This document shows, piece after piece, positions 41,408-49,597 of a stretch of DNA of 64,000 nucleotides. The position numbers and the translations under genes were made by a program. Below the pieces are notes generated by a model. The model made no database searches. It was not told where the DNA came from and saw only the letters and a list, made by a program, of their open reading frames with translations. The stretch is taken from sequence record LC727695.1; one strand, 5' to 3'. Every line of letters begins with the position of its first letter. Position 1 is the first letter of the stretch.

Positions 41408-41545
41408 ATGTAGAAATAATCCCTCCCCCTTGTTTCTACATTAGTCATAATAGATCGGAGCCAGTCCCCCTTCCAACTGGCTCCCAGAGAGTAAAACTCT
41501 TTGCTGGGCATTAATGACGATATATCGCCTCCCTTCGGGGAGGCT
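41408..41545 (+). ncRNA. candidate sRNA with C-rich anti-SD loops
   Basis: TATG start motif, two 9-bp hairpins with CCCTCCCCC / CCCCCTTCC loops, closing terminator 41527-41544. Confidence 0.55.
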
Positions 41546-41607
41546 TTATATTTTGTTTTTACGTATGTATATTAAAATATGTATAAACAACATAGAGTAA
41601 TTATAAA

Positions 41608-42060
41608 ATGATCAAAAATGAACTTTTACCAGGGCTAATCTATGCCCAAAAAGAATTTGATAAAATTGCAGCTAATGTAAAAGACTATGATAAGTATAAA
41701 AGACGCGAAGCTGGTAGGGCAAGTGCCGTTTTAAGAAGTCTAGTGAGCAATATTGTAAATCAGAATAAACCATCCTCACTTGAACATGAAGGCAAAGTTA
41801 GTACTACTAATACTAATGAATATTTAGAAGAAGTTAATAATTACTTCTTTAACATTAATAATATTAAATTAATTTCTCCTAAACTCATAAAAGAGAAATT
41901 AACAATTGATCTAATGAATATTTATGTTAAATGGAATATGATTGGAGTGGCTGGCCGAAATGATGTTCCAATTATTGAACACAGAATTAATGATTGGTGC
42001 GAAGTGACCGATGTCTACATTAATGGTAATAAGATAACTTCTTTACAATGGCCACGTTGA
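41608..42060 (+). CDS. hypothetical protein
   Basis: 150 aa ORF. Confidence 0.7.
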   Translation: MIKNELLPGLIYAQKEFDKIAANVKDYDKYKRREAGRASAVLRSLVSNIVNQNKPSSLEHEGKVSTTNTNEYLEEVNNYFFNINNIKLISPKLIKEKLTIDLMNIYVKWNMIGVAGRNDVPIIEHRINDWCEVTDVYINGNKITSLQWPR

Positions 42061-42118
42061 ATTTAAAATAAGTTGTAATAAAATACCTAGCATTACATGT
42101 TATGTATTGAAGCACAAT

Positions 42119-42203
42119 GCCCGAATGGTGAAATTGGTAAACACAGAAGACTTAAAATCTTCCGGCTACGGTCTTGTCGGTTCGAATCCGACTTCGGGCA
42201 CCA
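42119..42203 (+). tRNA. tRNA-Leu(UAA)
   Basis: cloverleaf GCCCGAA/TTCGGGC, anticodon TAA, long variable arm, CCA encoded. Confidence 0.97.
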
Positions 42204-42212
42204 ATTTAAATA

Positions 42213-42288
42213 CGGAGTGTAGCGCAGTTGGTAGCGCGCCTGCTTTGGGAGCAGGATGTCGGGAGTTCGAGTCTCCCCACTCCGACCA
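42213..42288 (+). tRNA. tRNA-Pro(UGG)
   Basis: CGGAGTG/CACTCCG, CCTGC-TTTGGGA-GCAGG, CCA. Confidence 0.97.
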
Positions 42289-42309
42289 TTTTAATAATAG
42301 GTAAATAGG

Positions 42310-42603
42310 ATGGATAATAAATGGATATCATGGGAACATCAAATTATAGGAACAGCTCTTTACGCTATTCTTAGTGACCCTGAATTAACTAATATTCAAT
42401 TAGCTCAAGGCTTACACTATCTAACAGAAGCAAAGTCTTCTGTATTACATGTTTGTAATAACCATATTACATTCACTGTAACCTATCCACATGGCACATT
42501 TAGAACCAATGTAATTAGAGAGTGCCCTGCTAGTGATACAAATACATTCAAATGGTCAGGTGTATTAGTCCGTCAAAAAGATGGAACATTCTTACCAGAA
42601 TAA
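42310..42603 (+). CDS. hypothetical protein
   Basis: 97 aa inside the tRNA cluster. Confidence 0.7.
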   Translation: MDNKWISWEHQIIGTALYAILSDPELTNIQLAQGLHYLTEAKSSVLHVCNNHITFTVTYPHGTFRTNVIRECPASDTNTFKWSGVLVRQKDGTFLPE

Positions 42604-42610
42604 ATAAAAA

Positions 42611-42687
42611 GGGCCTATAGCTCAGTTGGTTAGAGCAGGCGACTCATAATCGCTTGGTCGCAGGTTCAAGTCCTGCTGGGCCCACCA
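42611..42687 (+). tRNA. tRNA(CAU), most likely Ile2 (lysidine-modified) rather than Met
   Basis: AGGCGACTCATAATCGCTTGGTCG arm matches remembered enterobacterial ileX. Confidence 0.85.
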
Positions 42688-42739
42688 TATACTAGCCTCC
42701 CACTTGGGGGAGGTTTTATACTGTCTCATTGAGGAAAAC

Positions 42740-42961
42740 ATGAATACAGTAATAATGTTGGTATTATCTATCAAAGTTGGATTATTTGGTTTCATTTCGA
42801 CTAATGAAAGTAATATCCTATTTGAAAATAGGGAACAGTGTATTTCTCATCTGGATATTCTGGAACATAAATACAAGTCTCTTGAAGTTATTCGAAATGA
42901 GAATACTCTAAAGATAACCGAAAGAGATAACCATTCTATTTATATTTTTAAATGTCTCTAG
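42740..42961 (+). CDS. small protein with N-terminal hydrophobic helix
   Basis: ATG after GAGGA (track opens at 42704). Confidence 0.65.
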   Translation: MNTVIMLVLSIKVGLFGFISTNESNILFENREQCISHLDILEHKYKSLEVIRNENTLKITERDNHSIYIFKCL

Positions 42962-42969
42962 GAAAATAC

Positions 42970-43257
42970 ATGGAACATCAAGAACAAAAAGAACTATTGA
43001 GACAACCATTACAAACACTTTATAATCTTACTTTTAGTCCCCGTTTACGTAATGGAGCGAAGGCTCCCGATTGGATTCACCTGACCGATGAAGTAACCCT
43101 ATTCCCAAACGGATTAGATATTACAATCAACGCTGTTACACGTTGCATCAAATGGGAACTTATCGGCGAGGATGTAAGTAACATTACTTATGTTGAAGCT
43201 ATGTTCTTTAATAAAGGTCTTAAAGCAGTTAAAGCCTATCTCAAACATACGGAGTAA
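42970..43257 (+). CDS. hypothetical protein
   Basis: start MEHQE after AGGA (track opens at 42952). Confidence 0.65.
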   Translation: MEHQEQKELLRQPLQTLYNLTFSPRLRNGAKAPDWIHLTDEVTLFPNGLDITINAVTRCIKWELIGEDVSNITYVEAMFFNKGLKAVKAYLKHTE

Positions 43258-43259
43258 AT

Positions 43260-43607
43260 ATGGATCATCTAACCCCAACGCAGAGCGCTGTATATTTCAC
43301 ATTTATTAGCCCTGAGTTTATAAAGCTAACTCTTGTTGAATCTTTTGTAGCGATCCACAAGAAACATCCAGAAGTAAAGCATTGCGTTAAGAAAAAGATT
43401 AGTGCTAATGAAACGCAGTTTATCTTTATCTTCAAAGATGGGACTGATAATTTAATCATTACACGTAAAACTGAACCTTGCCCTGAACTGGATAGCCCAG
43501 TAGGCGATAGTATTAAGTTGTCCGGCGAAGAACTTAAAAATATTCTTGCTAAGTACGATCGTCCCAAGGATGGTAACTATTTCAAGCACTGGACTGATCG
43601 CCCGTAA
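43260..43607 (+). CDS. hypothetical protein
   Basis: 115 aa, GGAG RBS. Confidence 0.7.
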   Translation: MDHLTPTQSAVYFTFISPEFIKLTLVESFVAIHKKHPEVKHCVKKKISANETQFIFIFKDGTDNLIITRKTEPCPELDSPVGDSIKLSGEELKNILAKYDRPKDGNYFKHWTDRP

Positions 43608-43659
43608 TAAAATATTACTGGTTATGTAATACTATGTAGGAAGTCATGTCCATACGTTT

Positions 43660-43736
43660 GCGCTCATAGTTCAGTTGGTTAGAATACCCGCCTGTCACGC
43701 GGGTGGTCAGGGGTTCGAGTCCCCTTGGGCGCGCCA
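43660..43736 (+). tRNA. tRNA-Asp(GUC)
   Basis: GCGCTCA/TGGGCGC, anticodon loop CTGTCAC, CCA. Confidence 0.97.
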
Positions 43737-43742
43737 TTTAAT

Positions 43743-43818
<76 letters not shown>

Positions 43819-43824
43819 TATTCT

Positions 43825-43848
43825 AAAGAGTAGCTTCGGCTACTCTTT
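43825..43848 (+). terminator. terminator after tRNA-Asn
   Basis: AAAGAGTAGC-TTCG-GCTACTCTTT. Confidence 0.9.
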
Positions 43849-43902
43849 TATGTTGCCATGGGTTATCTTATGAATTAAAATGATTTACTTGAGAGCACAC
43901 TC

Positions 43903-44910
43903 ATGTTTGAATTACTATTATCGCCAGATATAGGCGAAGAGTTACCCTTGGTTGGATTTAATGAAATTATTAAATTAGGTGATCTACCTGTAGCGTTAGC
44001 TGGTACAATGTCATATGTGGATGGAAATACACTGTATGTTGGATCTGGTCATCATACTGAAGGACAAACAGCTGCAACTGTGTTCAGACGTTTTACCATA
44101 TCGCCATTTGCCGATATAGGTGCAACTGCTTCTGGAACATTCTTACCAGGGGTATCTTTAGGATTTGGGACATTACATAAGAATAACTTTATTGTTTATG
44201 GCGGTATTACTGGATGGAACTCGGCTGGTAATGGTGGTACGGGAACATCTAACTTTATACAACATTTTGATATAGCTACAGGCAATAGGGTTGAGCGATA
44301 TAGTGGTCCCGTACCACTTTGGGGCACAGCCTCCGCATCAGATGGTAATGATCTTATTCTATGCGTTAACCCAATTGGCGTAAACGCAATGCGATTAAAA
44401 CCATCAAGTAAGTCTTGGCTTAGCGGGCAAGACTATTCAGGTGGTGCTCGTTCAGGTCAACAGTTATTCTTTTATAATGGTTACTTTTACCATTTTGGTG
44501 GTTGGGATAATACAAAGAACATACCTAATCTTGAAGTTTATCGATATAATGCAACTACCTTAATATGGGAGCAAACACCTTGGATGATTATACCTGCTGA
44601 TAAAGGAACAATCTGGCAAGGTAATGGTTATGTAGATGGGGACTATTTTAATTACCTTAACGCTGTTGATGTCGGCGGTGTAACTAAAATGTTTGCACAA
44701 CGTTTTAATATTAGGCGCCGGAAATGGGCTGAACCATTTGAACTAGGTATCGGATTCCTTAATATTTCATCTATAGCTAAAGGTCCGGATAATAGCATGA
44801 TCATTGTAGGTGGATCTAAAATGCCAGTTGGTGGTGGAGCATATATGTTGAAAAGCCAATTGTTATCAGGTATCTATCAGGTAAAACTAGCACCATTAAT
44901 CATTGATTAA
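43903..44910 (+). CDS. Kelch/galactose-oxidase-type beta-propeller protein
   Basis: repeated LYVGSG, FIVYGGI, FYHFGGW, MIIVGG blades followed by Y/W. Confidence 0.8.
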   Translation: MFELLLSPDIGEELPLVGFNEIIKLGDLPVALAGTMSYVDGNTLYVGSGHHTEGQTAATVFRRFTISPFADIGATASGTFLPGVSLGFGTLHKNNFIVYGGITGWNSAGNGGTGTSNFIQHFDIATGNRVERYSGPVPLWGTASASDGNDLILCVNPIGVNAMRLKPSSKSWLSGQDYSGGARSGQQLFFYNGYFYHFGGWDNTKNIPNLEVYRYNATTLIWEQTPWMIIPADKGTIWQGNGYVDGDYFNYLNAVDVGGVTKMFAQRFNIRRRKWAEPFELGIGFLNISSIAKGPDNSMIIVGGSKMPVGGGAYMLKSQLLSGIYQVKLAPLIID

Positions 44911-44959
44911 AATAATAATATTTATAACTATTTAGATAATTATACTGGCACGATGATAT

Positions 44960-45170
44960 TATGTAAGAGTACTATAATAAAGTATTCTTAAATCTATCCA
45001 CTAAACACACTCGGTGGTAGAACTTATTATAGAGTGTGTCTAAATGCCAGGGGTTTGCCACCCCTGGTTATATTCATTGTTACTATTATAAATTCATTTA
45101 TAGATGAGAAAAGGTTTTATCACCTTTTCAAAATCGGCATTTAATTCCAGTTAAAAAACTGAATCTATGC
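44960..45170 (+). ncRNA. candidate structured RNA/leader
   Basis: TATG followed by five hairpins of 7-10 bp. Confidence 0.4.
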
Positions 45171-45194
45171 TACATTGTAATAAAGGAGTCTATT

Positions 45195-45707
45195 ATGACT
45201 AACTCTAATCAGTTTGTAAGAACTATTGTAAAGTACCAAGATATCCTAGATGCTTTAATTCAAAAAACGAATGAGAACTGGGTTAATTATCGATCTAATT
45301 CTATTGGTCATATTGTTATTCGTGAATACAGGACTGTTGGATTATTTGTAGGTCGGCAATGTGGTAGTACAACTGCATTGATTGAGTTTGCTAATCGTCA
45401 TCCTGGCGAATGTCTAGCTGTATTTGTAGAAGATAAAATTAAACAGGCTGTACTGGCTAAGTTCCAGAATGCTAAAGATAATATTGTTTCTTGTTTAATT
45501 ACACACCAACTCCGTAAATATATTCATCAACCTGAGGAATCATCTATTCAAAAAGATATTAAAGAAGAATTAATATCGTCTGTAAAATATATTCTTGTTG
45601 ACAATGCCTCATTTAATCTGAACCTACGCGGTATCACTGATAAAGAATTTAACCAGTGGGTTGCAGATACTTTTGGTACAGAGGTAATGGTGGTTCGTTT
45701 TAGTTAG
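45195..45707 (+). CDS. hypothetical protein with a degenerate P-loop-like motif
   Basis: 170 aa, AAGGAG RBS, LFVGRQCGSTT. Confidence 0.75.
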   Translation: MTNSNQFVRTIVKYQDILDALIQKTNENWVNYRSNSIGHIVIREYRTVGLFVGRQCGSTTALIEFANRHPGECLAVFVEDKIKQAVLAKFQNAKDNIVSCLITHQLRKYIHQPEESSIQKDIKEELISSVKYILVDNASFNLNLRGITDKEFNQWVADTFGTEVMVVRFS

Positions 45708-45868
45708 AATTAGTAACTTTGATAGTTTCTAATAAGATTAACTACACGTTATTTACATAATGTCATAACAAGAAATAAATAATACTCAGATTGTAATAAT
45801 ATGTAGTTATTACATATCTATATTAGGTTGTCAGTAACTCATCTCTAATATAAAATCGCCATAATTCT

Positions 45869-45905
45869 TCCGTGATAGCTCAGTCGGTAGAGCAAGTGAC
45901 TGTTA
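45869..45905 (+). pseudogene. 5' half (nt 1-37) of a split tRNA-Asn
   Basis: identical to 43743-43779; ends after GTT-A. Confidence 0.95.
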
Positions 45906-45914
45906 CGATTTCAT

Positions 45915-46001
45915 TGGTAAGTACCCGAGTGGCAGCAGGGAGCGGACTGTTAATCCGTTGGCGAAAGCCCACCGTAGGTTCGAATCCTACCTTACCAGCC
46001 A
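45915..46001 (+). tRNA. atypical class II (long variable arm) tRNA with GUU (Asn) anticodon
   Basis: TGGTAAG/CTTACCA, G73, CCA; D arm CCCGAGTGGCAGCAGGG; GCGGA-CTGTTAA-TCCGT; V arm GGC-GAAA-GCC; GTAGG-TTCGAAT-CCTAC. Confidence 0.88.
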
Positions 46002-46006
46002 ATTTC

Positions 46007-46032
46007 TAAAAGTAGCCAGCTGGCTACTTTTA
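46007..46032 (+). terminator. perfect 26-bp palindrome/terminator after the nested tRNA
   Basis: TAAAAGTAGCCAG-CTGGCTACTTTTA. Confidence 0.8.
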
Positions 46033-46084
46033 TCTTGTTCTATAGATCGAACTAGCTATCTATTTTTTAAACCCTAGGTTCGAT

Positions 46085-46643
46085 ATGAAAGAAAAAAATA
46101 ATTAATGGTTATCGGGCTCTGTATTTACCTGAACATCGGCAGGCAAAAGCTAACCCCAAAATGTTTGGATGGGTATACGAACACCGTGTAGTCGGTGAAG
46201 ATACAATCGGAAGATCTCTTTACGATGACGAAGAGGTTCATCATTTGGATGAGAACAAACTCAATAACCATCCCGATAATCTTTTGATCCTCCCTCAATC
46301 ACAGCATCTAAAACTACATGCATGGATGAAACGACTGGGCATTGATCCAAAGAACTATCCTACAAAACTTTGTGGTGCTTGTGGTAGGGTAATGAATCAT
46401 AAATTGATTAAATTCTGTAACCCTGAGTGTTCTGCCAAAGGTCGACGTAAGGTTGATCGACCATCTAAAGAACAACTCGTCCTTGACGTTACATTGTTAT
46501 CTCTTGTGAAAATAGGAGAAAAGTATGGGGTATCGGATAATGCAATTCGTAAATGGTGTCGGTCATACAAAATCAATATTCCAGCTAGGTTTATTAGGGT
46601 CAGCACTAATGGGGGTATTAGCACCTTGGCCCCCACACAATAA
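46085..46643 (+). CDS. HNH homing endonuclease (HNH + CxxC/CxxxC zinc ribbon + HTH), frameshifted near the start; in-frame ATG at 46161
   Basis: YEHR...VHHLDENKLNNHPDNL; CGAC...CNPEC; GVSDNAIRKW; upstream GYRALYLPEH lies in the same frame but the ATG at 46085 is out of frame across an A7 run. Confidence 0.88.
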
Positions 46644-46679
46644 AAATATACTCGATGTAGATTAATATACAAAAACATA

Positions 46680-46718
46680 ATCACTGGGTCCCTGGTTCTA
46701 ACCCAGGTCACGGAGCCA
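46680..46718 (+). pseudogene. 3' half (nt 38-76) of the split tRNA-Asn
   Basis: 36/39 identical to 43780-43818; all three differences are in the T loop; CCA present. Confidence 0.95.
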
Positions 46719-46762
46719 ATTCATAGTTTTAGATTTAGTTATATTTCACTACTATGTAAACT

Positions 46763-46788
46763 ATAAAGGCAGCTAATGCTGCCTTTAT
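46763..46788 (+). terminator. terminator after the 3' tRNA half
   Basis: ATAAAGGCAGC-TAAT-GCTGCCTTTAT. Confidence 0.85.
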
Positions 46789-46849
46789 GTCGTCTTGTAA
46801 AAGTACCCAGTAGTTGAATCTTATAGCTGAATACAAATAGGGTAAAGAC

Positions 46850-47035
46850 ATGTCACTTAAAGCATTGCAAGATATAGTTAGTAGTGTTCCTACAAATGAA
46901 CAAAAGGAACGATTAGTTAAAGTTCGGAAAACGATGGAAGAGCTAAATGAGTCTATTAAGAATCAGATTCGTAATAAACGACCTAGTCAAGCTCTTCTCG
47001 ACAAAACGATAAACTGGGGTACCAAGTATGGCTAA
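46850..47035 (+). CDS. small coiled-coil protein
   Basis: 61 aa, overlaps the next gene. Confidence 0.65.
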   Translation: MSLKALQDIVSSVPTNEQKERLVKVRKTMEELNESIKNQIRNKRPSQALLDKTINWGTKYG

Positions 47036-47318
47036 GACATTAGTTCGTGCAAAGCTGATTACTGAAGCTGGTCAATGGATGTCGTCTGACTGGGAATGTG
47101 GTTTCCGTGCATGTCGATTCGTGAAACTTGGTAATGATCATGTAAACATAAAAGACTTTGAGGCTATGATCACGGCATTCGAAGTTGGTGACATGTTAGT
47201 GATTTGGCCAAATGGGCTTAGAACTTCGTATAGTGTGGATAATTTCAATAAGTACTTTTCCCATATCAAAGATGAATACCATGAGACTGATCTCCGTCCA
47301 CTCTTTTACCCCAAGTAG
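47028..47318 (+). CDS. hypothetical protein
   Basis: 96 aa; GDMLVIWPNGLRTSYSVDNFNKYF. Confidence 0.7.
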   Translation: MAKTLVRAKLITEAGQWMSSDWECGFRACRFVKLGNDHVNIKDFEAMITAFEVGDMLVIWPNGLRTSYSVDNFNKYFSHIKDEYHETDLRPLFYPK

Positions 47319-47534
47319 TTGAGCTTATGATAACTATATTCGTGTATAAATACATTACATTCGTTATACCCTTTAATTGATTGAAATCAAGCTACATAAA
47401 AGTGATTGAATGGTCCATGTAGGTGATAATTTTAATAAAGGTAAAGGATTTATCAGAGAATATCTCAGTGCATTTAGGTATTTTATCACTCGCCTATCTA
47501 AATCACATAAAGCCCTTTACCGAGGAATGTGAGA

Positions 47535-47630
47535 ATGTTGGTTGCGATTGATAATACTGGGACAGAATATGATGTCGACCCAACTGATGAAGTAGACGTA
47601 ATGTTTGTATTTAGACCCACACTAAAATAA
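47535..47630 (+). CDS. micro-protein (31 aa) missed by the track
   Basis: GAGGA RBS; MLVAIDNTGTEYDVDPTDEVDVMFVFRPTLK*. Confidence 0.5.
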   Translation: MLVAIDNTGTEYDVDPTDEVDVMFVFRPTLK

Positions 47631-47789
47631 CTTTATATGACTTAATACCCCTCTATATAGAGTGGTCTATTTATAAGTAAAATTATACATAGAGTTAATA
47701 TTATTTGTAGATTAGTTCTACACATAACTCAACTTGAAACCGGGTGTTAATAAAATTTAACACTACGGAAAACATAAAGGTGTATAAAA

Positions 47790-48419
47790 ATGGCTTTTCA
47801 TTTTACTGAAGTAGATTTAAATGATTTTATCAATGAATCAGGTAAAGACTTAAAAATAAATGTTGGTAAACAAACACTAGCAGTTTATGATATCGATAGG
47901 CTAAATATTGTTAATTCAACTATTAATAAACTAGTTTATAATGAACCTATAAGTGAAGAACACATAGATGCATCACTTACAGATAATTCATTAAAAGAGC
48001 TTAATGATTATTTACTAAATGTTGGTGTTACTGAAAGCGCTAAAATGATGATTGATGCTGTGTTAGAATTAAGCGATTATCATAAAAGTGATGAATACTT
48101 TAACCCAATGATGTATAAATTAAAAAGTATGCACACTAAAAATACAGATGGTGTTTATTTGATATTTTTACCAACGCCTACTATCGATGATCAAATTAAC
48201 ACCATGCAAGGGTATATTATCAATAAATCCGGTAATCTCATTAGGACTACTGTACAGTCATGGCGATTTGAGAAAATTGAATTCAAAGACTTAGCCAAAC
48301 ATGATAGACGTTGGTTATTTATTGAATATTACATTAATGTTAAACAAACGAAAAATAATATAATCAAAGAGCAACAAGATGAATTAACTAAATTTATTTA
48401 TTATAGTACTCTAAGTTAA
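47790..48419 (+). CDS. hypothetical protein
   Basis: 209 aa, AAGGTG RBS; ends at terminator 48443-48465. Confidence 0.75.
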   Translation: MAFHFTEVDLNDFINESGKDLKINVGKQTLAVYDIDRLNIVNSTINKLVYNEPISEEHIDASLTDNSLKELNDYLLNVGVTESAKMMIDAVLELSDYHKSDEYFNPMMYKLKSMHTKNTDGVYLIFLPTPTIDDQINTMQGYIINKSGNLIRTTVQSWRFEKIEFKDLAKHDRRWLFIEYYINVKQTKNNIIKEQQDELTKFIYYSTLS

Positions 48420-48475
48420 AACAAATAAAAAATAAATATAAGAGCTAGCCCCTAATGGGCTAGCTTTATGTTATC

Positions 48476-48613
48476 TTACTCTGCTACATCTTTTACATCA
48501 GGTTTATTATTCCAACGTACTGCTCTCGCAATACCATACGTAAGAATAAGAGCACCCACGGTGCCAATAGTGGTGCTAATAATAATGCCAAGAGTTTTTG
48601 GATCAATATTCAT
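48476..48613 (-). CDS. small single-TM early protein (45 aa) missed by the track
   Basis: MNIDPKTLGIIISTTIGTVGALILTYGIARAVRW...; own early promoter and AGGA RBS. Confidence 0.7.
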   Translation of the reverse strand: MNIDPKTLGIIISTTIGTVGALILTYGIARAVRWNNKPDVKDVAE

Positions 48614-48669
48614 ATTTAGTATCCTATTTACAATTAATAGAAAATATTACTTTTAGTAATATCACATTT

Positions 48670-48697
48670 GTAATATACCTTTTAAATAGGTTTGAAT
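48670..48697 (-). promoter_or_regulatory. early vRNAP promoter
   Basis: ATTCAAACCTATTTAAAAGGTATATTAC on the minus strand. Confidence 0.85.
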
Positions 48698-48761
48698 ATA
48701 ACTTTATTTATTATAATAAATTAAAATAATACTTTCATATACACTATATGTAGAAGATTAC

Positions 48762-48838
48762 GCCGCTATAGCTCAGCTAGGTAGAGCAACGCACTTGTAA
48801 TGCGTAGGTCCTCCGTTCGATTCGGAGTGGCGGCACCA
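48762..48838 (+). tRNA. tRNA-Thr(UGU)
   Basis: GCCGCTA/TGGCGGC, ACGCA-CTTGTAA-TGCGT, CCA. Confidence 0.97.
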
Positions 48839-48967
48839 AATTTACTGAGGTTTAAACTATTCTTAAATATATTAGTTAGGATGGGATTGAACGTGAAAGA
48901 CTCAGTAAATCATATTGCCCCTCCATATGGAGGGGCTTATGTTTGTCATTAATCAGGAAAATATAAA

Positions 48968-49144
48968 ATGAGTCATCTATTATTTATCATCCAAGAATAT
49001 ATTACTAATAAATTTGAGATAACACGAATTGACATGAAGACAGGCAATAGAATGTTACGTGTATGTGTATACGGTCAACATGATGGAAAAGGTTTCGTCC
49101 GTGTAGATTTATGGTCAGTTGGTTATCGTATTACAAAGAAATAA
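48968..49144 (+). CDS. small protein (58 aa) missed by the track
   Basis: AGGA RBS; MSHLLFIIQEY...GYRITKK*. Confidence 0.6.
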   Translation: MSHLLFIIQEYITNKFEITRIDMKTGNRMLRVCVYGQHDGKGFVRVDLWSVGYRITKK

Positions 49145-49186
49145 TACTCCAGATTATTTAATATGTATTGATCAAAGGAGTTTATA

Positions 49187-49597
49187 ATGAGTAATGAAAC
49201 TAACTATCTAGGTTATGAATGGAAAACAGATATAACTACTTCAAATCTTAATAGAGTAGTTGATTTATATACACTTGAATTAGCATGGCTAAAAGAAGAT
49301 TTTAATGATACTCTTTTTATAAAGTCTTATAAAGTACTAGAGGGTTTATTAGAAGAGCCATCTAGGGCAATCCATGATGATACAGTGTCCATTCAAAATC
49401 AATTAGATGAATTAAATACTGTTTTTAAATTAGTATTTGGAAAAGATAATGATGTAGAGTTATCAATTAATAATGATTCAATTATTGTAATCGGCACTAC
49501 ATATGCAACTAAAGAAAAGTTAGAAGTAGAGGTACGTGAGTTTGCATATAGGAAATCATTAATTGATGAACGTTATCCAGATATTGTAACGGATTAA
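49187..49597 (+). CDS. hypothetical protein
   Basis: 136 aa, AAGGAG RBS. Confidence 0.75.
   Translation: MSNETNYLGYEWKTDITTSNLNRVVDLYTLELAWLKEDFNDTLFIKSYKVLEGLLEEPSRAIHDDTVSIQNQLDELNTVFKLVFGKDNDVELSINNDSIIVIGTTYATKEKLEVEVREFAYRKSLIDERYPDIVTD

Follow-up and report, generated by a model that had tools for sequence, protein, structure and literature searches.

A tRNA-Asn gene of phiKZ-type Pseudomonas phages split by a probable homing-endonuclease cassette that carries a second tRNA-Asn

The stretch of DNA analysed here, 64,000 nt from record LC727695.1 and referred to as the window, belongs to a phiKZ-type Pseudomonas phage and contains a tRNA-Asn gene that is split by a 774 bp insert. Over the region of the locus the window has the sequence of Pseudomonas phage Brmt (100% identity) and matches the reference phiKZ genome (NC_004629, 268659–269859, minus strand) at 99.7%. 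All features described lie on the plus strand of the window. An intact tRNA-Asn(GUU) gene, copy 1, occupies site 1 beside tRNA-Asp at 43743–43818 (ARAGORN; Rfam, 70.3 bits). Copy 2 is in two pieces, with the 5′ half (nt 1–37) at 45869–45905 and the 3′ half (nt 38–76, CCA included) at 46680–46718. The insert between them comprises a 9-nt spacer, a nested tRNA, a terminator, an HNH endonuclease gene and a 36-nt tail. The phiKZ annotation lists the nested tRNA as tRNA-Asn PHIKZ_t02 and the open reading frame (ORF) as the HNH endonuclease PHIKZ296; the tRNA-Asn halves are unannotated in all records read.

The 5′ half corresponds to nt 1–37 of copy 1 without a mismatch, and the 3′ half to nt 38–76 except for three T-loop bases (TTCTAAC versus TTCGAGT), which are the only differences between copy 1 and the split copy. 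Judged by alignment, exact matches of 37 nt and of 36 out of 39 nt cannot arise by chance. Both junctions carry TA and the point of insertion is ambiguous by 2 nt, so that the junction lies at 37/38 or, within the TA ambiguity, at 35/36 or 36/37. When joined, the halves give a 76-nt tRNA-Asn that is base for base the uninterrupted gene of phages KEN51 and PaSz-1. The original prediction, made from the letters of the window, had described a tRNA-Asn(GUU) divided at 37/38 by 774 bp whose halves restore a 76-nt tRNA, and in both respects the coordinates, the alignment to copy 1 and the alleles of these relatives agree. Minimum free-energy folding of the joined halves produced no cloverleaf even for the intact gene and was not used as evidence.

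The insert starts with the spacer CGATTTCAT (45906–45914), the boundary of which is subject to the TA ambiguity; a homologous spacer is present in PA1C, Psa21 and OMKO1. The nested tRNA-Asn(GUU) (45915–46001) is 87 nt in length and has U1–A72, G73, an encoded CCA and a variable-arm hairpin, GGC-GAAA-GCC. It is followed at 46007–46032 by a perfect palindrome (13 + 13), forming a hairpin of 11–13 bp, and then a T-rich tail, which on sequence and fold are predicted to act as an intrinsic terminator, in agreement with the palindromic terminator noted earlier between the halves. A predicted hairpin, AUCGAACUAG...CUAGGUUCGAU (46046–46084), with arms conserved in PA1C, ends at the HNH start codon and covers the ribosome-binding region. 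The HNH reading frame (46089–46643) and the 36-nt tail at the right end of the insert (46644–46679) complete the element. A 13-nt direct repeat links the T arm of the nested tRNA (ACCGTAGGTTCGA, 45971–45983) with the HNH ribosome-binding region (ACCCTAGGTTCGA, 46071–46083) and may be what is left of a further tRNA copy. A sigma-70-like promoter at 45828–45856, close before the 5′ half, is matched by consensus only; phiKZ uses its own RNA polymerases. About 0.7–1 kb upstream of the split tRNA, in the PHIKZ298–PHIKZ297 intergenic space (window ~44900–45190), an abundant RNA of ~100 nt is reported from Grad-seq (PMC8545117).

The split arrangement is present in ten independently sequenced records, the 2002 phiKZ reference included, and an assembly artefact, which the original prediction had named as a possible refutation, is ruled out. 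We used 1201 nt spanning the locus as a blastn query. In about 25 phiKZ-like records the query is matched over 427 nt in two pieces, that is 1201 minus 774, and these records carry the insert-free allele with copy 2 intact; ten records bear the insert. The comparison of the locus across relatives, which had been proposed as a check, thus finds uninterrupted tRNA-Asn genes in about 25 phiKZ-like genomes. These alignments show that the insertion is precise and that close relatives often carry the uninterrupted allele.

Four states of the two sites can be recognized. Most Phikzvirus genomes have both tRNA-Asn copies intact. Copy 2 is split in Brmt, NK1, phiKZ, 6B, 9-Ps-8B, 9Ps-7B, 14Ps5-6, 124.01 and 2PS. 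In OMKO1, U1B, U5, T2P and phi9_PA9 it is site 1 that is altered, to the 5′ half, spacer and nested tRNA, with neither the HNH gene nor the 3′ half; the right join falls in the terminator found behind either tRNA (GCCA-ATTCTAAA...). In fnug, KTN4 and others copy 2 and its surroundings are absent. The OMKO1 arrangement suggests an ectopic conversion in which the 3′ part of copy 1 was replaced, with the right crossover in the similar terminators. Two of the phages with a split copy 2, 124.01 and 2PS, have a 185-bp deletion that removes tRNA-Asp, copy 1 and the terminator (L011 3140–3150 versus L012 2960–3145; L numbers denote the loci in our collection). The replacement at site 1 in OMKO1 and the deletion in 124.01 would be the expected scars of breaks in the other tRNA-Asn gene that were mended from the cassette or by deletion.

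The T-loop sequence TTCTAAC had been put forward as diagnostic of the split copy. This is not the situation among the relatives, where each of the two T loops is found in split as well as intact alleles: KEN19, LC and KEN49 have an intact copy 2 with the ordinary TTCGAGT loop and the insert is found in both backgrounds. TTCTAAC is a polymorphism of copy 2 and was rejected as a marker.

The halves themselves are deteriorating. Those of Brmt are perfect. The 5′ half of phiKZ carries G28A, an uncompensated change in the anticodon stem, and those of 6B and 124.01 carry both G28A and A31G, again uncompensated; OMKO1 has G34T. Stem-breaking changes are confined to insert-bearing alleles and occur in none of nine intact alleles, the C2T change of the intact GUMS allele giving a U–G pair. 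In the PA1C group, at 82% identity, the 5′ half before the cassette ends with GCGACTG and the 3′ piece behind it begins with CTGGGTC. Some 7 nt of the anticodon loop and stem are missing there, and the right junction resembles that of phiKZ minus 33 nt. Psa21 and a 310-kb IMG/VR contig (L008) retain a degenerate 5′ remnant only, and no 3′ half was seen downstream of their HNH genes. Because the stem mutations in the 5′ half are confined to insert-bearing alleles and the older copies have lost parts of the halves, the compared alleles show the interrupted tRNA-Asn gene to be a decaying pseudogene that is not spliced back.

Just upstream of the cassette, Psa21 (L004, ~2170–2500) and L008 (~1890–2330) have in common a conserved non-coding stretch of ~350 nt. 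Its first part is a weak tRNA-like element (Rfam tRNA, 32 bits in L008; ARAGORN 'tRNA-Gly acc' in L004), and the rest of the stretch matches no Rfam family.

The nested tRNA has remained under constraint. ARAGORN assigns the anticodon GTT, the Rfam tRNA score is 53.7 bits, and the cloverleaf together with the 3-bp variable-arm hairpin and its GAAA cap is kept across all the nested-tRNA relatives compared. The covariation set consisted of phiKZ-type sequences, PA1C, Psa21, two metagenomic phages, a T5-like phage and Serratia phage CBH8. In this alignment 94.9% of cells pair and changes on both sides are found in 16 of 23 pairs, against 8.1 ± 1.6 in shuffles and 1–3 in slid controls. These comparisons show the nested tRNA to be a real, conserved and structurally constrained tRNA, as was expected of a complete second GUU tRNA within the insert. 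The earlier description of a replacement built on a different scaffold holds for the long variable arm; the scaffold is, however, not an ad hoc one. It belongs to a wider family of extended-variable-arm tRNA-Asn found in T5-like phages, Serratia phage CBH8 and metagenomic phages, and the view of the nested tRNA as a one-off Tyr-like scaffold was rejected. The same long-arm tRNA-Asn is followed in L105 (4119–5096, minus strand) by a different HNH endonuclease of 245 residues and in L106 has no nuclease beside it.

In Pseudomonas aeruginosa Asn-tRNA is made by a non-discriminating aspartyl-tRNA synthetase (ND-AspRS) and GatCAB, and bacterial GatCAB recognizes U1–A72 (PMC2330236). The nested tRNAs of the Pseudomonas phages have U1–A72 and G73, and appear compatible with the host charging route since these features fit the ND-AspRS/GatCAB identity rules. 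In OMKO1 and 124.01 the stretches read contain no GUU tRNA besides the nested one. U1B, U5, T2P, phi9_PA9 and 2PS give the same BLAST pattern as these two (records unopened), and blastn detected no second GUU tRNA in PA1C. The idea that the nested tRNA compensates for a destroyed gene therefore fits several relatives, in which it is the sole GUU tRNA, but not the window or phiKZ, where compensation is unneeded because the intact copy 1 remains.

The other gene of the insert encodes, as predicted from the sequence, an HNH endonuclease. Matches to Pfam HNH_3 are at 1e-9 to 1e-12 and to phrog_15471 at 4e-52, and the architecture is that of an HNH_3 domain with CxxC...CxxC and a C-terminal helix-turn-helix. 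The His/Asn/His residues and the four Cys ligand positions are conserved in 23 relatives. An AlphaFold2 (AF2) model has a predicted local distance difference test score (pLDDT) of 91, and the top PDB match in a fold search was I-HmuI; the template modelling score (TM-score) is low, as one would expect of an extended protein with several domains. In sequence the HNH protein is ~21% identical to I-HmuI, and a PDB sequence search with it gave no match, I-HmuI having been found by fold search alone. The model shows a predicted homing-enzyme fold that is I-HmuI-like.

The gene is disrupted at its start. The reading frame is open from 46089, its first canonical start is the ATG at 46161 and the annotated product has 160 residues. 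Comparison with PA1C and tblastn place the ancestral start codon at 46085–46087, from where the frame (46085–46105) stops after six codons at the TAA at 46103–46105. Where PA1C has GAGAAAA the window has a run of seven A (46092–46098), with one extra A. All four phiKZ-type copies that were read have this frameshifted start; in the others tblastn matches begin at residue 2. PHIKZ296 as annotated is without the first 25 residues, which form two β-strands in the AF2 model. An intact expressible nuclease ORF is absent from the window and from all phiKZ-type copies, and present in PA1C (185 residues), Psa21 (188 residues) and L008 (188 residues), the products being 61–88% identical to the phiKZ frame. 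Because the extra A sets the start codon out of frame, the phiKZ-type nuclease, that of the window included, is probably inactive or made at trace level only. It is speculation that slippage on the A run could yield traces of the full-length enzyme.

The relatives of this enzyme that were found lie mostly in phage tRNA arrays, and at least one more of them splits a tRNA gene. A first locus search with close homologues returned only Psa21 and one metagenomic contig; a pattern search with an alignment of six proteins gave 80 IMG/VR loci with HNH relatives. In 55 of the 80 there are tRNA genes within 1.5 kb of the HNH relative, 237 of 239 tRNAs are on the HNH strand and in 30 loci a tRNA ends no more than 250 nt upstream of the nuclease gene. 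Bacillus phage PBC2 has an HNH relative inside its tRNA array, after Asn and Asp, and in Salmonella phage 7t3 (L015) a tRNA-like gene lies 15 nt upstream of one. That element (1865–1946), of 82 nt, is annotated as 'tRNA-TERM' and is not called by ARAGORN; the adjacent HNH relative is 37% identical, and L047 has the same arrangement. In L040–L046 a tRNA-like gene (~1400–1467; Rfam tRNA, 40.7 bits) directly precedes the HNH relative and has acceptor, D and T arms, with a GAAA hairpin in place of the anticodon arm.

We also scanned for split genes by looking for orphan T arms with an acceptor strand able to pair with an orphan 5′ half lying upstream. The scan recovered the phiKZ and PA1C cases and, in addition, L022 and L088. 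In the metagenomic phage contig L022 (1403–2075) a second tRNA has an HNH relative inserted after U34, and there is no space left for a ribozyme. Some 300 nt before this split tRNA the same contig has a canonical group I intron (878–1126; RF00028, 62.4 bits) within a gene that resembles tRNA-Leu(UAA). In L088 (1377–2110) an insert of ~650 nt after U34 divides a tRNA-Arg(UCU)-like gene. It contains an HNH relative and P7-like motifs (GACTATA...ATAGTC), ends in G and is probably an ORF-bearing group I intron missed by Rfam. On the basis of the IMG/VR loci and the split-gene scan, the family seems to occupy three settings: it stands between tRNA genes, interrupts them without an intron and probably also occurs in tRNA introns. 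L078 (1302–1965) has an intact tRNA-Arg(UCU), an HNH relative and then an orphan piece with the T arm and 3′ acceptor strand. This orphan piece pairs better with the 5′ acceptor strand of the tRNA than the present 3′ strand does, and the 3′ half of the L078 tRNA may have been replaced by a cassette.

Beside HNH relatives there are class-I tRNAs whose variable arm has an added hairpin with a GAAA cap, namely Asn GUU, Lys UUU and Thr UGU (L020, 2010–2096; L024–L026, 1854–1938; L032–L035, 1293–1375; window, 45915–46001). No split halves were seen around the HNH relatives with long-arm tRNAs in L020, L024, L029 and L032. The same three isoacceptors are reported targets of the PARIS nuclease AriB (bioRxiv 10.1101/2025.02.04.636281), a coincidence that is suggestive at the level of these loci.

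The history of the insert can be followed in its flanks. Between Brmt and 6B or 124.01 there are no differences in 773 nt of insert, and phiKZ has two, while Brmt and 6B have 106 differences in their right-hand 5 kb of flank. At least three flank haplotypes bear the insert, and for each of them there is an insert-free relative that is closer. The nearest such relative is PaSz-1 for Brmt and KEN49 for 6B, and phiKZ has a left flank block in common with KEN51, GUMS and PA02. The phiKZ-like genomes are visibly mosaic. The polymorphism 47066A looked linked to the insert against three empty genomes and was rejected as an insert-linked single-nucleotide polymorphism, being carried also by the empty LC and KEN49; no marker strictly linked to the insert exists in the compared flanks. 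As read from these alignments, the pattern shows that the insert has spread by recombination. The flank pattern alone cannot separate nuclease-driven homing from frequent general recombination.

In our view the 774 bp form a free-standing homing-endonuclease cassette that has no intron and carries a replacement tRNA as its cargo, and we would put the probability of this at about 0.72. The insert-free alleles, the precise insertion, the identical insert across divergent flanks and the decay confined to insert-bearing alleles support the idea of a non-intron, homing-type element that destroys a tRNA gene and carries a tRNA of the same specificity. As far as sequence comparison reaches, the interpretation offered in the original prediction is supported in its structural and evolutionary parts.

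A mechanism may be proposed along the following lines. During co-infection of a cassette-bearing and a cassette-free phage, the HNH enzyme would nick or cut the intact tRNA-Asn gene, and repair would copy the cassette from the donor, the tRNA halves and flanks serving as homology arms. The cassette allele would be immune to the enzyme since its target site is split. Decoding of AAY codons would be kept by the cargo tRNA, which may bring an added benefit, for example as a variant that resists host tRNA nucleases. The nested tRNA is placed directly behind the captured 5′ half and its upstream region, with its own terminator after it. It could thus be transcribed from the upstream region of the old gene, with the 46-nt remnant, of which the pseudogene 5′ half is part, as the leader of its precursor, and be released by RNase P, the transcript ending at the terminator. 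The HNH gene would be reached by read-through only and its ribosome-binding site would be masked by the hairpin; masked ribosome-binding sites occur in other phage homing genes. The phiKZ-type nuclease would later have been crippled, making the element a young but already degenerating copy.

Several observations weigh against this assignment. Cleavage of the intact tRNA-Asn gene by the HNH enzyme is something we infer. Copy 1 is identical to the target over nt 1–56, and over all 76 nt in the 6B type, yet it coexists with the cassette, and its survival is awkward if the enzyme is active and recognizes only the tRNA gene; the crippled nuclease of the phiKZ-type phages may be the reason. The frameshift is in every phiKZ-type copy, and recent spread may owe more to homologous recombination. 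The contrast between insert and flanks is weaker close to the insert, as the nearer ~2 kb of flanks show nine differences, for which ~3.5 would be expected in the insert. The nested tRNA and the target tRNA-Asn have an 11-nt core in common, GACTGTTAATC, which on sequence makes immunity of the nested tRNA not self-evident. Finally, an anti-defence benefit of the cargo tRNA may exist by analogy solely with the tRNA-Asn of T5, which is reported to help overcome AriB (bioRxiv 10.1101/2025.02.04.636281). The T5-like phage Spc35 has a tRNA-Asn with the extra variable arm, and we assume that the arm is also in T5's own tRNA-Asn.

A rival explanation is movement by recombination alone, without help from the nuclease, in which a block of tRNA and HNH gene entered once by illegitimate or microhomology recombination and was then shuffled, with the HNH gene a passenger or directed at targets elsewhere. 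The out-of-frame HNH start of all phiKZ-type copies, flanks that are strongly mosaic regardless of the insert, the uninvaded, target-identical copy 1 of Brmt, phiKZ and 6B, and a 2-nt TA overlap that could be microhomology are all in keeping with it. We nevertheless regard it as unlikely. HNH relatives lie beside or inside tRNA genes in dozens of unrelated phage contigs, and this habitual proximity argues that tRNA DNA is their habitual target; the conversion at site 1 in OMKO1 and the deletion there in 124.01 resemble break scars; and the orthologues of PA1C, Psa21 and L008 are intact at 61–88% identity with all HNH and zinc ligands kept. The TA at both ends of the insert is also the pattern of a 2-bp target-site duplication, as would be left by a DNA transposon of the IS630/Tc1 type or a non-autonomous derivative. 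Such an origin is extremely improbable given that there are no terminal inverted repeats (at best 14 of 40 positions agree between the left end and the reverse-complemented right end), that the only ORF is the HNH endonuclease and not a transposase, and that a 2-nt match is met by chance about once in 10–16 cases.

An unusual intron, whether self-splicing or protein-spliced, would remove the 774 nt and ligate the halves to a working tRNA-Asn. Position 37/38 is the canonical site of tRNA introns in archaea and eukaryotes, the Brmt halves are perfect and an HNH relative seems to reside within the probable group I intron of the tRNA-Arg-like gene of L088. We hold splicing to be very improbable all the same. 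Neither the group I (RF00028) nor the group II Rfam models gave a match at E ≤ 1 in 41500–49500, scans of the relatives were likewise empty, and the positive control, the 62.4-bit group I intron in the tRNA-Leu-like gene of L022, was detected. The ~130 nt that lie outside the tRNA and the ORF could not accommodate a ribozyme core. For the three junctions that are possible, the last base of the insert is A, T or A and never G, and its first bases are CGATT or TACGA, not GUGYG, which bears out what had been noted of the junctions at the outset; the sole ORF is that of the HNH endonuclease. A strong predicted terminator stands between the halves, the stem mutations of phiKZ, 6B and 124.01 are uncompensated, PA1C has lost loop and stem bases, and no 3′ half was seen in OMKO1, Psa21 or L008. 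A group I or group II intron was rejected on the Rfam result, the missing terminal G, the internal terminator and the decaying exons, and the last two also speak against the protein-spliced tRNA intron that the original prediction had kept as its alternative. Pseudomonas is not known to have a tRNA-splicing endonuclease. A split tRNA made in trans as in Nanoarchaeum, with halves transcribed apart and joined via complementary flanks, could draw on the common orientation of the halves and the CCA kept by the 3′ half. It is scarcely credible, as the flank duplex, at −8.8 kcal/mol, is matched by 90 of 500 shuffles (−6.8 ± 2.3 kcal/mol) and the exon decay applies equally to it.

Returning to the homing cassette with its cargo tRNA, a broader proposal can be made, which we advance as a doubtful one. 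PHIKZ296 would belong to a widespread HNH family of 'tRNA swappers' that break canonical tRNA genes and install GAAA-arm variants along with their own genes, and so spread nuclease-resistant, anti-defence tRNAs. The extra arm might also make the gene of the cargo tRNA immune to the homing enzyme.

Homing endonuclease genes normally persist in self-splicing introns or inteins, or between genes. A nuclease gene inside a tRNA gene without splicing, where the damage is paid for by a substitute tRNA, would represent a third way of being tolerated; selfish elements that disrupt a gene and also supply its substitute are rare. We found no description in the literature, the 2002 phiKZ genome paper not covered, of the split tRNA-Asn of phiKZ or of an HNH cassette interrupting a phage tRNA gene, which with that limit agrees with the earlier impression that the arrangement is new. 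PhiKZ is the model nucleus-forming jumbo phage, and natural filled and empty alleles are already in collections. For annotation, the halves are unannotated pseudogene fragments and PHIKZ296 as annotated is an N-terminally truncated ORF.

The closest precedent is SegB of phage T4, which has its preferred cut inside the tRNA-Asn gene of SegB-less relatives and co-transfers tRNA genes on homing (PMC2330249; PMC13096335). A more recent study showed SegB-driven amplification of a tRNA-Tyr gene against Septu, a host defence (PMC13096335). Both segB and the phiKZ gene are free-standing and encode a nuclease within a phage tRNA cluster. Homing by SegB erases recipient markers, its expression is kept low and its tRNA cargo can serve against host tRNA-cleaving defence. 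The phiKZ locus would link this type of nuclease-driven exchange of tRNA clusters with phage tRNAs that counter such defence. SegB is a GIY-YIG and not an HNH enzyme. It is situated between tRNA genes and leaves none split in its own genome, whereas the phiKZ cassette splits one at 37/38; nor does it carry a same-isoacceptor replacement on a different scaffold, as the phiKZ insert does. The cleavage and biased inheritance of SegB are experimental, and the phiKZ cassette is known from sequence comparison alone. What is new with respect to the SegB theme is the class of nuclease, the visibly split tRNA gene and the replacement of the same isoacceptor inside the insert.

Other systems share single features with the locus. 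I-HmuI (PDB 1U3E) combines an N-terminal HNH domain with a C-terminal helix-turn-helix, as does the phiKZ protein, and gp210 of PhiPA3 is an intron HNH enzyme that homes between co-infecting nucleus-forming Pseudomonas jumbo phages (PMC11620839). Both are encoded in self-splicing group I introns and their host genes work, while the phiKZ insert is without a ribozyme and its host gene is dead. Known genes for HNH-type site-specific endonucleases in a phage tRNA cluster are likewise embedded among tRNA genes, and are not reported to interrupt one. The extra variable-arm hairpin is present in a tRNA-Asn of T5-like phages, too. Group I introns in tRNA anticodon loops, for example in tRNA-Leu(UAA), use the same site and sometimes contain a homing ORF; unlike them the phiKZ insert has no ribozyme and no terminal G, and has an internal terminator and decaying exons. 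The integration of phages and islands into tRNA genes likewise targets a tRNA and brings sequence that preserves decoding. Those elements use an integrase and att sites and rebuild the same tRNA, whereas the phiKZ insert has a nuclease as its sole enzyme and brings a whole, different tRNA.

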